From: Octopus bimaculoides
Taxonomy: Eukaryota
Assembly: GCF_001194135.2 (NCBI RefSeq)
Contig: NC_068991.1
Location: forward strand, 71,968,065-72,032,064
DNA: 64,000 nucleotides
Direction of reading: 5' to 3'
The position numbers and the translations under genes are program-made. The notes beneath the pieces were generated by a model, which did no database searches, was not told where the DNA came from, and saw nothing but the letters and a program-made list of their open reading frames with translations. Below, in pieces: positions 8,786-20,324 of this stretch (position 1 is the first letter of the stretch; each line of letters starts with the position of its first letter).

Positions 8786-9820
8786 TCAGTTTGATGCAAG
8801 AGAATAGAGGGAGAATGCGTCACCCGATGTTGGCACCAAAGTAACAGGAAAAGGAGATGGTGAGGATGTTTGCTGTAAGACTTCAGTTGAACTTAAGTCT
8901 GCTTTTGATAATTCGGGACTTAACGATTTATTTGGAGATTTTCTTTCATTGTCTTTCTGTGAAGATTGGTTGTCATGAATGGAATTGTTCATCTGTTTAT
9001 CTTCTCCACTGTCTCCATCGCTGTTGCTACTGTTGTTGCTAGGGACTGTGGTTGTGCTGCAGTTACTGTTGTTCATGTGTTCAGTGCTTTGATCTTGAAG
9101 GTTGTTCTCATAACTTTTACCATCTTGTGACAAATAAGAACTAATCTGGTCAGTACTTTGCTTTTTCTGACTAAGCTGAACAGAAGAATTAAACTCTGAA
9201 GAATGCTGGTACGGTTCTGTTTTGACTTGTCCTTGGGGAGTCGTAAAAATCTGAGCATTCTGACTCGTGGACGGAAGACAATATTCTTGACTATCAGGAA
9301 ACACAACAGGCATGTCACTCCCAGTGTGGATTCTAGAGATTGCTGAAGCAGCAGGACTTGCAAGAGCAATGTTATGGTAACTCGGAAGATCTGTAGAATG
9401 CTGATAATGATTAGGATCTATTCTATCAGCCAGACTATGGTCGTCCCCTAAATTAAGAATTACAGTCTGTTTGCTAGGGCGCCCTCTTTTCCGTTTGCCA
9501 GCATATTCCTGGCTGTAATTTTCAATCAAAGAAGGCATGGTTAACGGAAGCTGCAGATGAAGCTTATATTCAGCTAAACTGGAAGAAAATTCTCGACAAT
9601 ATCGCTGGACCTTCTCTACTTTCAGCAAATTAGCAACACGTTCAATGTCTTTGTAATTGTACTCAGTCAAGTTCAACACTCCATCGTAAAGAAAAGCTAC
9701 AAAGGTGGCAAGAGCTTCATCGTTGATACCAGACGGAAGATTCACTTCAAGCTCTGCACCGTCTCTTATGTTTTTCTCAAGCAGATGAGGACTCACAGCA
9801 AATAAAATCAGTCGATGAAG
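8786..9820 (-). CDS. BTB gene terminal coding exon 8 (BTB C-terminal part, AT-hook, Ser/Gln-rich tail)
   Basis: Acceptor cttttatag|CTTCATCGA; 345 codons to TGA at 8788-8786; extends ORF 8786..9796. Confidence 0.9.
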   Translation of the reverse strand, partial: LHRLILFAVSPHLLEKNIRDGAELEVNLPSGINDEALATFVAFLYDGVLNLTEYNYKDIERVANLLKVEKVQRYCREFSSSLAEYKLHLQLPLTMPSLIENYSQEYAGKRKRGRPSKQTVILNLGDDHSLADRIDPNHYQHSTDLPSYHNIALASPAASAISRIHTGSDMPVVFPDSQEYCLPSTSQNAQIFTTPQGQVKTEPYQHSSEFNSSVQLSQKKQSTDQISSYLSQDGKSYENNLQDQSTEHMNNSNCSTTTVPSNNSSNSDGDSGEDKQMNNSIHDNQSSQKDNERKSPNKSLSPELSKADLSSTEVLQQTSSPSPFPVTLVPTSGDAFSLYSLASN

Positions 9821-19473: not shown

Positions 19474-20324
19474 TCACTGCTTGGAATCGAACTCGGAATC
19501 TTGGGGTTGTAGCCTGCACTCTTAACCACTACGCCATATGCCCACAGCGAAAAATACCTTAGGAATGAGAATCAGGTGCCAGTCATGTGGCACTGGCATC
19601 GACCATGCTTGAATGGCGCTTTTTATGTGCCGCTGGCACAGGTGCCAGACCACAATTTCTAATAATATTAAATGATAAAAATATAATAGGATTTTTTAAA
19701 AACATTAAATGGCTATGAGGGTCCCGTAGAGTAAAATAGGGATCAGAGGGTCTATAAGTAAAGAATGGTTAAGAACCACTGATCCCTACCTATACTGTTT
19801 GATTTATTCTAGCAGTGATACCCAACAACGACAATAACAACAGCAACCACATTATCAAATTGTACATCTAGAAACAAGACAACACAATGACAGTAAGACA
19901 TTAATGAAAAAATATAAATACCTCTTACCATCGGACTATTAATCATCAATGAACTATTTGTAACCACTGGACTATTGACCATTAAATTGCTACAACTGAC
20001 CATTGAGGAGGTGAGCAATGAAGAAGTGTTACTAACCATAGGACTGGTAGCTTGTGTTACTGGGCTTTGACTCATAATGTTACCAGCACCTGGACTGATA
20101 CCCATGGATAATTCTGAGAGATTCATAATTACATTCAGTCGGTCTCCATCTTGTAAGTCTGATGGTTCAACATCGACCCAGTCGTGCCAGTCATCGTTCC
20201 ACTTCTGGATACTAAAATTTCCTGACGGCAAATTGAAAGCACGAGTTATCATGCTTCGGATAATGTAAGGATACAACACATCGAGCACCTTCTTCTTGTA
20301 ACCAAAAGTAATGTGAAACTTCAT
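8786..20324 (-). CDS. Multi-exon gene, 770 aa: PB1/ubiquitin-like N-terminus + SAMD3-like helical module + NLS + BTB/POZ + AT-hook
   Basis: complement(join(20324..19929,18292..18126,16090..15923,14812..14719,13945..13772,12823..12699,11643..11490,9820..8786)) = 2313 nt, open throughout. All introns are GT-AG and the phases match (0,2,2,0,0,2,0). BTB: LSWLWRTNKLCDAVICSGETKIM|LHRLILFAVSPHLL...FVAFLYDGVLNL...VANLLKVEKVQRYC. AT-hook: KRKRGRPSK. Confidence 0.85.
11490..11643 (-). CDS. BTB gene coding exon 7 (BTB N-terminal part)
   Basis: Acceptor ctatttcag; donor ATG|gtaaat; encodes FTSSYVK...LWRTNKLCDAVICSGETKIM. Confidence 0.9.
12699..12823 (-). CDS. BTB gene coding exon 6 (DGLESWSTGQG...LCEESP)
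   Basis: Acceptor ttttacttttaatag; donor ag|gtaatt; phase 0 to 2, exactly bridging exons 5 and 7. Confidence 0.75.
13772..13945 (-). CDS. BTB gene coding exon 5 (ESWSATLSDKFRNERR...KRKRRR...QAQ)
   Basis: Acceptor aatttag; donor cag|gtaaat; 58 codons; contains basic NLS-like KRKRRR. Confidence 0.85.
14719..14812 (-). CDS. BTB gene coding exon 4 (YPTSSQYKEVAMAIITEYSHLRDTVPGGKGY)
   Basis: Acceptor gattacag; donor tat|gtaagt; phase 2 to 0. Confidence 0.85.
15480..15685 (+). mobile_element. Second abundant SINE family (GTCGACTTTGCCTTTCATCCTTTCGGGGTCGATAA core); representative copy
   Basis: Other copies: 3170-3365(+), 4052-4400(+, tandem), 6820-6990(-), 10315-10520(-), 24415-24650(-), 27200-27290(-). 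Confidence 0.85.
15923..16090 (-). CDS. BTB gene coding exon 3 (HSEHMEFKPWPVPFRIP...YDEMINYT)
   Basis: Acceptor tttactttgtag; donor gt|gtgagt; phase 2 to 2; not in the ORF track. Confidence 0.85.
16754..16977. mobile_element. piggyBac-type MITE
   Basis: TTAA|CCCATTAGCGCCCA ... TGGGCCCTAATGGG|TTAA. Confidence 0.8.
17763..17981. repeat. 97-bp tandem repeat, about 2.3 copies
   Basis: TAGATGGTGGCAAGTGCC recurs at 17769, 17866 and 17963. Confidence 0.9.
18126..18292 (-). CDS. BTB gene coding exon 2 (VTNSSLMSGFEE...RNKL)
   Basis: Acceptor tttattcag; donor gc|gtaagt; phase 0 to 2. Confidence 0.8.
18408..18858 (+). mobile_element. Abundant tRNA/CORE-type SINE with internal (TA/TG)n; representative copy
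   Basis: GGAGTGGCTGTGTGGTAAG head, GGTTCAGTCCC B box, CCTTGGGCAAGT CORE-like segment, AAAAGAGT tail. Other copies: 11135-11476(+), 30541-30720(+), 14925-15278(-), 43750-44063(-), 47122-47508(-); partial at about 10050, 38770, 44990, 63400. Confidence 0.85.
19291..19543 (-). mobile_element. Hammerhead-SINE copy A (full length, core mutated)
   Basis: Reverse complement matches copy B from head to tail; core reads CCGAUGA...AAAAC. Confidence 0.8.
19929..20324 (-). CDS. BTB gene coding exon 1 (MKFHITFGYKKKVLDV...INSPM)
   Basis: Acceptor ttttttacag|aaaATG (exon starts 20327); donor ATG|gtaaga; 132 codons. Confidence 0.8.

Follow-up and report, generated by a model that had tools for sequence, protein, structure and literature searches.

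A BTB/AT-hook gene of Octopus bimaculoides with a probable mobile-element half at its N-terminus

The question raised by this locus is how a BTB domain came to stand in the middle of a 770-amino-acid (aa) protein, behind a beta-grasp head and a helical module of the SAMD3-like type, and whether the two halves belong to one gene at all. The gene lies in a stretch of 64,000 nucleotides (nt) from Octopus bimaculoides (contig NC_068991.1, positions 71,968,065 to 72,032,064, hereafter the window), where it runs from 20324 to 8786 on the minus strand. We consider it likely to be a domesticated fusion, in which half of a mobile-element protein has been spliced onto a BTB/AT-hook gene to give a putative chromatin-bound scaffold or repressor. 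Two unrelated units would thus have been fused at the exon level into one gene: exons 1-5 would represent the 5' half of a CACTA-type accessory gene and supply the promoter, start codon, head, module, and a basic patch, and exons 6-8 would supply a ZBTB-class BTB, a single AT-hook, and a long tail that is disordered apart from a few short conserved motifs. The evidence comes from spliced cuttlefish transcripts, from mobile relatives of the upstream half in two other phyla, and from the conservation of both halves between octopus and cuttlefish.

Rebuilt from the raw sequence, the gene consists of eight exons that form one 770-aa frame plus stop codon, the same length as the single frame in an earlier reading made from the sequence alone (the sequence-only reading). 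All introns are of the GT...AG type with compatible phases. The exons and the features within them are as follows.

20324-19929, minus strand: exon 1 (aa 1-132, ATG at 20324), beta-grasp head and start of a serine/asparagine/methionine-rich linker
20324-20121, minus strand: beta-grasp domain (PB1/ubiquitin-like, aa 1-68), from an AlphaFold2 model and Foldseek
18292-18126, minus strand: exon 2 (aa 133-187), serine-rich low-complexity linker, matching the Argonauta and Sepia orthologues
16090-15923, minus strand: exon 3 (aa 188-243), opening half of the helical SAMD3-like module (KPWPVPF...MINYT)
14812-14719, minus strand: exon 4 (aa 244-275), module core, (V)YPTSSQYKEVAMAIITEYSHLRDTVPGGKGY
13945-13772, minus strand: exon 5 (aa 276-333), module end (ESWSATLSDKFRNERR), KRKRRR basic patch, and linker
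13870-13853, minus strand: KRKRRR basic patch, within exon 5
13771-12824, minus strand: intron 5, 948 nt and gap-free, separating the putative transposon-type half from the BTB half
12823-12699, minus strand: exon 6 (aa 334-374), linker, lacking an in-frame ATG and common to both cuttlefish isoforms
11643-11490, minus strand: exon 7 (aa 375-426), within which the BTB/POZ domain begins, at 11585
9820-8786, minus strand: exon 8 (aa 427-770 and stop), remainder of the BTB, AT-hook, and disordered serine/asparagine/glutamine-rich tail
9820-9584, minus strand: remainder of the BTB, in exon 8
9499-9467, minus strand: probable AT-hook GKRKRGRPSKQ, in exon 8
9316-9260, minus strand: tail motif DMPVVFPDSQEYCLPSTSQ, in exon 8, conserved to cuttlefish
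9226-9212, minus strand: tail motif VKTEP, in exon 8, conserved to cuttlefish
8827-8789, minus strand: C-terminal tail motif SGDAFSLYSLASN, in exon 8, conserved to cuttlefish

An acceptor stands 5' of the ATG of exon 1 (ttttacag/AAAATG) and therefore points to a non-coding 5' exon upstream; in a cuttlefish messenger RNA (mRNA), the 5' untranslated region (5'UTR) begins with a separate exon that lies 5 kb ahead of exon 1. The SAMD3-like peptide quoted in the sequence-only reading is split between exon 4 (14811-14719) and exon 5 (13945-13898). In the exon 4 core, the proline of YPT is invariant across the family alignment. Exon 5 ends in a phase-0 donor (CAG/GTAAAT), and exon 6 is the sole candidate in its interval that combines a phase-0 acceptor, a length of 2 modulo 3, and a stop-free frame; it is corroborated by three relatives (P0001, P0002, and P0180). 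The tail motif VKTEP fits, in our own reading, the psi-K-x-E consensus for SUMOylation.

The predicted protein has five parts in the following order: a beta-grasp head, a serine-rich linker, a five-helix SAMD3-like module followed by KRKRRR, an internal BTB, and an AT-hook with a disordered tail. The internal BTB and following AT-hook that had been remarked on earlier are both recovered by Pfam, which places BTB/POZ (PF00651) at aa 409-505 (E 2.7e-10; score 40.9 bits, cut-off 20.5) and a sub-threshold AT-hook (PF02178) at aa 535-544. The canonical AT-hook core KRKRGRPSK (RGRP, about aa 534-544) is kept in the Argonauta and Sepia orthologues. Over aa 390-505, the best sequence matches of the BTB in PDB are to ZBTB17, BCL6, myoneurin, and BACH1, and on such similarity we place the octopus BTB in the ZBTB class. 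The layout of the ZBTB family, with an N-terminal BTB and a C-terminal C2H2 array, is not that of the octopus protein, in which the BTB is internal (aa 395-505 of 770). C-terminal of the AT-hook Pfam finds no zinc finger or further domain, the tail being rich in serine, asparagine, and glutamine and of low complexity, and within aa 1-390 it finds no match, including no SAM domain in the 770-aa protein.

The N-terminal parts were characterized by structure prediction and family profiles. The AlphaFold2 model of the head, built from a 47-sequence family alignment, is a beta-grasp with a predicted local distance difference test score (pLDDT) of 90.5, in which strands at aa 2-7, 10-15, 37-43, 48-51, and 62-67 are accompanied by a helix at 19-30 and a short helix at 55-57. 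In a Foldseek search against PDB, its neighbours are the PKD ULD, two NBR1 PB1 domains, ubiquitin, and the Raf Ras-binding domain (RBD), with E of about 4e-3 to 1e-2 and template modelling (TM) scores of 0.59-0.67 (0.64-0.66 for NBR1 PB1). By sequence, the Pfam PB1 profile (PF00564) matches two of the 47 family members weakly (best E 2.6e-4) and the octopus sequence not at all, and the head family profile finds BILBO1-NTD (E 0.0065) and no PB1 among PDB sequences. The head does carry an acidic stretch and a KKK run, whose equivalence to the OPCA motif and the conserved lysine is not established. The label "PB1-like" given in the sequence-only reading can thus be kept as a fair description of the predicted fold and is only partly borne out, PB1 membership not being established. 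For the module, the Argonauta segment (3 residues different from octopus) was used as the first row, and the model shows five helices with a pLDDT of 89.7. Searches with this model turned up no structural neighbour, whether in PDB (best E 1.3, TM below 0.35) or in BFVD (best E 0.85), and from PDB sequences the module profile retrieves only designed helical proteins (E 0.036 and above). A MADF/Myb-like DNA-binding assignment, considered from the sequence pattern, was set aside, since neither the fold nor the profile searches of PDB returned such a match.

An exhaustive phmmer search with aa 1-333 (E<=1e-3, best 150 of 207 matches listed) found 207 matching proteins, nearly all of them over aa ~190-310, and the module family is represented in cnidarians, echinoderms, molluscs, crustaceans, and fish. 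A first homology search had returned only the relative P0001 with aa 1-396 and none with aa 188-400, a null result without weight given the 207 matches found later. Several matches are named SAMD3-like by NCBI, including proteins of a sea cucumber (P0008, E 3.8e-19), a crinoid (P0014, 3.3e-15), and goldfish (P0134, 1.3e-5), and the SAMD3-like proteins of goldfish and of a soft coral carry a true SAM domain followed by the module; the name SAMD3-like, proposed earlier, therefore holds. Head and module are both present in 46 of the 179 family proteins fetched, with the head first wherever coordinates were listed. The pair is therefore taken to be ancestral and not a cephalopod invention, and from these comparisons head-plus-module appears to be an old, multicopy metazoan unit. 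A Pfam scan of 125 module representatives detected SAM in eight and BTB only in the Argonauta orthologue, so that among these 125 proteins the BTB fusion is seen only in cephalopods. The idea of a lineage-specific fusion in the sequence-only reading is accordingly retained for the BTB join, the head-module pair itself being no part of the novelty. The C-terminal ~250 aa usual for the family have no match in the window (tblastn with the 179 family proteins). In Haliotis, a 587-aa member (P0005) has the head followed by two modules (aa 235-349 and about 454-549), and the module can therefore be duplicated in tandem.

The sequence-only reading had further suspected that SAMD3-like frames are transposon-associated, possibly in EnSpm/CACTA elements, and the family does keep such company in two lineages. 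In the sea cucumber Apostichopus japonicus, one family protein (P0156) is identically encoded at four loci on three chromosomes, two of them inside other genes, and common to all four is a 15.3-kb block with sharp borders and 99.6-99.8% identity. The block is listed as follows.

7425-22755 of locus L006 (CM075709.1), with further copies at L007-L009: sea-cucumber element, CACTA/CMC-like DNA transposon

All four copies end in TA/CACTC...CAGTG/TA and have subterminal tandem repeats near the right end with an offset of about 77 nt. A 750-aa open reading frame (ORF) within the element weakly resembles Transposase_21 (tnp2; E 4.4e-4; score 20 bits, cut-off 28.6), and a complete intron-containing SAMD3-like gene lies inside the sharp borders. 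Animal CACTA elements are described as having a 2-bp target-site duplication and a second, non-conserved accessory protein (PMC1636069). By these features the sea-cucumber element would be a CACTA element, its placement within CMC being not settled, and it looks to have been active recently. In the soft coral Dendronephthya gigantea (L010 4994-13594, and L011), a transposase of the sea-cucumber type (tblastn E 1.6e-39) is arranged head to head with a gene encoding SAM plus module, and the pair lies inside an 8.6-kb block common to two loci with 98.5% identity. The family gene would therefore represent, in both animals, the second, non-transposase gene of a CACTA/EnSpm-like transposon. Moreover, the octopus gene and the gene of the sea-cucumber element agree in the position and phase of three introns in the region of the module, namely nine codons before PWP (phase 2), within the valine codon before YPT (phase 2), and after a conserved tyrosine (phase 0); the two introns that flank exon 3 are among them. 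These shared positions and phases support inheritance, at the DNA level, of an intron-containing copy. A literature search on SAMD3-like proteins, and on SAMD3 together with transposons, found nothing relevant.

It is conceivable, and in our judgement unlikely, that the fusion is real and its exons 1-5 derive from an ordinary host SAMD3-like paralogue, the sea-cucumber and soft-coral copies having been captured by elements. Vertebrate SAMD3 behaves as a host gene, CACTA-type elements capture host gene fragments in plants, and the Pfam scan found no transposase domain within any of the 125 module proteins, all of which would suit such a history, and transposon linkage was examined in two lineages only. 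However, the same transposase family stands beside the module gene in both a cnidarian and an echinoderm, which argues for an old intrinsic association over a single capture. The gene in the sea cucumber is enclosed whole, with its introns, by the element, and many lineages hold clusters of module-gene copies that are at least 90% identical.

A second alternative concerns the join between exons 5 and 6, on which the sequence-only reading had posed the choice between a fusion and two separate genes. Two adjacent genes might have been misjoined, exons 1-5 being a separate SAMD3-like gene and exons 6-8 a BTB gene with its first exon elsewhere. There were grounds to take this seriously: the first relative found (P0001, 567 aa, present in two RNA-seq assemblies) matches exons 6-8 and has a different, zinc-finger-like N-terminus, and the annotation of the cuttlefish Sepia pharaonis splits the locus into two models, CAE1302324.1 (480 aa, corresponding to exons 1-5 followed by non-conserved sequence) and CAE1258452.1, named "ZBTB24" (569 aa, corresponding to a zinc-finger exon and exons 6-8). 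However, the exon 1-5 model lies at the 3' end of the 74.7-kb contig CAHIKZ030003630, which stops 9.3 kb after exon 5, and the "ZBTB24" model begins 3.5 kb from the start of the 558-kb contig CAHIKZ030001275. Among cuttlefish transcripts, two RNA contigs of independent origin (L005, run ERR4031017, and L012, run SRR21372860) each contain one 756-aa ORF, in which exons 5 and 6 meet at the codon predicted by the octopus model (...SSYRQTQ/EGLESW in cuttlefish, ...RQAQ/DGLESW in octopus). Both contigs skip the zinc-finger exon, and on the S. pharaonis genome they align at 98-100% identity, with the 5'UTR exon and exons 1-5 on CAHIKZ030003630 and exons 6-8 on CAHIKZ030001275. From the contig-end positions and the spliced RNAs together, the split annotation is therefore resolved as one gene lying across two contigs.

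The same fusion is annotated in Argonauta, where the 741-aa protein GAB1601279.1, whose name refers to Octopus sinensis LOC115217157, shares the architecture of the octopus model and is 91% identical over the exon 1-5 query. The exon 5 donor is conserved, and similarity to cuttlefish genomic or unspliced ORFs ends exactly there. In the octopus itself, intron 5 is without gaps and without a zinc-finger exon, and exons 6-7 offer no start codon able to give a complete BTB. The join of exons 5 and 6 in two cuttlefish mRNAs and in the Argonauta annotation thus answers the earlier question in favor of the fusion, and a misjoining of two genes is very improbable. The splice from exon 5 to exon 6 is read directly in cuttlefish mRNA, and the gene structure and domain content are likewise observed.

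The cuttlefish gene has two sets of first exons. Isoform A consists of head, module, BTB, and AT-hook, and isoform B (567 aa) of zinc finger, BTB, and AT-hook; in two transcripts (L001 and L002) the zinc-finger first exon is joined to exons 6-8. This exon is located as follows.

3368-3913 of locus L004 (S. pharaonis CAHIKZ030001275): cuttlefish zinc-finger first exon, between exons 5 and 6, encoding 135 aa

Its product shows a CxxC...H....H zinc-finger-like motif (YFYCTICRKDVSIQHQGIKDVARHADGKKH), for which Pfam gives only a faint ZN292-like match, and presumably recalls the N-terminal fingers of domesticated proteins of the hAT/BED type. The zinc-finger isoform is probably the parental host transcript of the BTB gene. 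By tblastn the cuttlefish exon has no match in the octopus window at E<=10, which leaves exon 5 as the sole coding entry to exon 6 there; octopus exons 6-7 have no ATG before M426.

Comparison of the octopus coding sequence with the cuttlefish mRNA gave amino-acid identities of 94% for the module, 95% for the BTB, 69% for the beta-grasp head, and 49-67% for the linkers and tail. The nonsynonymous rate (dN) is ~0.05 in both the module and the BTB, with a saturated synonymous rate (dS above 1.5 or not computable). These alignments indicate that both halves of the gene are under equally strong purifying selection, and that the gene is real and has been conserved at least since the common ancestor of octopus and cuttlefish. 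That a recent or decaying transposon copy merely resides upstream of the BTB gene and gives rise to chimeric transcripts as functionless read-through noise would fit the transposon-borne state of the family elsewhere and the commonness of host-transposon chimeric transcripts, and is nonetheless scarcely credible, given that the exons are single copy in the window, no transposase relic accompanies them, the C-terminal half of the family protein is absent at the locus, the same exon order precedes the same BTB exons in cuttlefish, and the module is conserved as much as the BTB at saturated dS. By the same tokens (no transposase relic, conservation with cuttlefish, and single-copy exons), we rejected exons 1-5 as a live transposon copy. 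The octopus locus does not have the make-up of an EnSpm/CACTA element, showing no transposase match and, within the window, single-copy exons; we take it to be a domesticated gene and not an element.

Several points weigh against the reading of the gene as a domesticated mobile-element fusion with a chromatin role. The transcripts that support the join come from cuttlefish and not from octopus, where the splice would follow from orthology, from the logic of the splice sites, and from the annotation of Argonauta. For exons 1-5, a transposon origin is deduced by analogy from the family in two other phyla and not from the locus itself: the sea-cucumber transposase has no tblastn relic in the window or in loci L003 and L004, terminal repeats not having been searched. 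The linkage of the family to transposons, observed directly, was tested in two lineages, one echinoderm and one cnidarian, and transposons can capture host genes. On the protein side, the AT-hook at aa 535-544 scores 12.4 bits, below the Pfam cut-off of 17.4. The head is not assigned to PB1 because ubiquitin, RBD, and ULD folds score alike, and a biochemical role cannot be assigned to the module because it has neither a fold neighbour nor a profile match.

Taking the domesticated fusion as the likely case, we propose that splicing came to connect the element half with exon 6 of a BTB/AT-hook gene that had its own zinc-finger first exon. The basic patch and the AT-hook suggest a nuclear protein. 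The AT-hook would bind the minor groove of AT-rich DNA, the BTB would dimerize, and the beta-grasp head may add a second surface for oligomerization or partner binding. The helical module may have inherited a function in target recognition or partner binding from the transposon accessory protein in the TnpA position; a TnpA-like role in DNA recognition is an attractive guess by analogy. The whole protein would then act as a scaffold or repressor on chromatin, a role in chromatin or transcription that we infer from its parts.

The nearest precedent for such a gene is given by the host-transposase fusion genes that arose by exon capture and alternative splicing, such as KRABINER, SETMAR, and PGBD3-CSB (Cosby et al., 10.1101/2020.05.07.082677). 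In these, fusion and parental transcripts coexist when the fusion is young and older cases tend to keep only the fusion; the main text of that study mentions neither BTB nor CACTA (10.1101/2020.05.07.082677). Similarly, in the cephalopod gene the putatively transposon-derived exons are spliced to exons for host regulatory domains, and cuttlefish has both the fusion and the presumed parental transcript, while the octopus window holds the fusion route only. Judged as a host-transposon splice fusion, the gene shows the splice in the two cuttlefish mRNAs (L005 and L012) together with purifying selection, with the transposon origin deduced from the family. Unlike the known cases, the captured part appears to be the N-terminal half of an accessory gene and not a transposase or its DNA-binding domain; it stands upstream and would supply the promoter and start codon; and the lineage is cephalopod, not tetrapod.

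The individual parts also have known counterparts. As in SAMD3 and SAMD3-like proteins, the octopus module has five helices and the motifs WP..F..P, YT.YPT..QY..VA, YP.L, and W...L..KF+N.RR, followed by a basic KRK patch. Unlike them, the octopus protein has a beta-grasp head instead of a SAM domain, and the C-terminal ~250 aa are replaced by BTB, AT-hook, and tail. ZBTB24 and PATZ1 are transcription factors that combine a BTB with an AT-hook. The octopus protein resembles them in having a BTB that we assign to the ZBTB class with an AT-hook soon after it, and the short cuttlefish isoform is even annotated as "ZBTB24"; it differs in the internal position of the BTB and in the lack of a C-terminal C2H2 array. 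With PB1 scaffolds (NBR1, p62, Par6, and aPKC) and the PKD ULD, it shares an N-terminal beta-grasp of ~70 aa, in which an acidic stretch on strands 3-4 (WNDDWHDWVDVEPSDLQDGD) recalls the OPCA motif, but the head has no significant PB1 sequence match, and ubiquitin and Ras-binding domains fit it about equally. Finally, the sea-cucumber element is like CACTA/En-Spm in its CACT... termini, subterminal tandem repeats, and tnp2-like ORF, and its SAMD3-like gene occupies the second, non-transposase position as TnpA does, whereas no sequence similarity to plant TnpA was detected.

If the proposed origin is correct, the gene offers a clean invertebrate case of a new regulator made when exons of a mobile element and of a host gene were shuffled together, and an unusual one in that the accessory protein of the element was captured rather than its transposase. 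With both isoforms in cuttlefish and the fusion alone in the octopus window, steps in the birth of a gene become comparable between lineages. The poorly understood SAMD3 module is linked to CACTA-like transposons in two phyla, and its confidently predicted fold, unmatched in PDB and BFVD, makes its role a concrete and testable question. Regulatory genes have undergone well-known lineage-specific expansions in cephalopods, and a conserved, coleoid-specific BTB chimera would be a reasonable candidate for lineage-specific chromatin regulation. More tentatively still, and as a possibility we would not lean on, the SAMD3-type unit could be the TnpA-equivalent of metazoan CACTA/CMC elements, its N-terminal half having been domesticated in coleoids before their divergence and vertebrate SAMD3 having been domesticated independently. 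The unit would then comprise a polymerizing head (PB1-like beta-grasp or SAM) and a five-helix module with a fold lacking a PDB or BFVD counterpart, and the octopus protein, as an oligomeric chromatin factor, may still recognize DNA or partners of the transposon type.

Two assembly gaps fall within introns of the gene.

12134-12143, no strand: assembly gap within intron 6, with an exact repeat of the preceding 54 nt right after the Ns
18720-18729, no strand: assembly gap within intron 1, with an exact repeat of the preceding 44 nt right after the Ns

The exact 54- and 44-nt duplicates indicate unmerged contig overlaps, so that the sequence is continuous and no frame is affected; the possibility of exons hidden in the gaps, or of a frame broken by them, was therefore rejected. 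The duplicates flank the gaps within 12080-12197 and 18676-18773, as expected of overlapping contigs joined by the scaffolder and left unmerged, and further 10-N gaps in the window (29614, 34106, and 47332) may have the same origin. Near the gap at 12134, a 94-nt direct repeat (12615-12708 and 11873-11966, 94.7% identical) places a second copy of the exon 6 boundary (the final 10 nt of the exon, the donor, and the first part of intron 6) deeper in intron 6, which may reflect a small duplication or an effect of the assembly.

Each of the eight exons occurs once within the window, and the tblastn matches of the 179 family proteins are confined to them. The introns are crowded with interspersed repeats; short ones occur in up to 22 copies in the window in both orientations (for example 10668-11086, 13135-13314, 16304-16490, and 18407-18714), and ARAGORN detected no transfer-RNA-like head in the interspersed repeats of the window. 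About 1.2 kb past the stop codon of the gene, positions 6500-7545 (minus strand) hold a degenerate 5' fragment of eukaryotic 18S ribosomal RNA (rRNA; Rfam RF01960, 104.7 bits, model positions 1-948), which may fall in the 3' untranslated region and looks like an rRNA-derived pseudogene or insert. On the plus strand, a 123-aa ORF at 39609-39980 looks like a fragment of a long interspersed nuclear element (LINE) reverse transcriptase (...YADDFTLIAES...).

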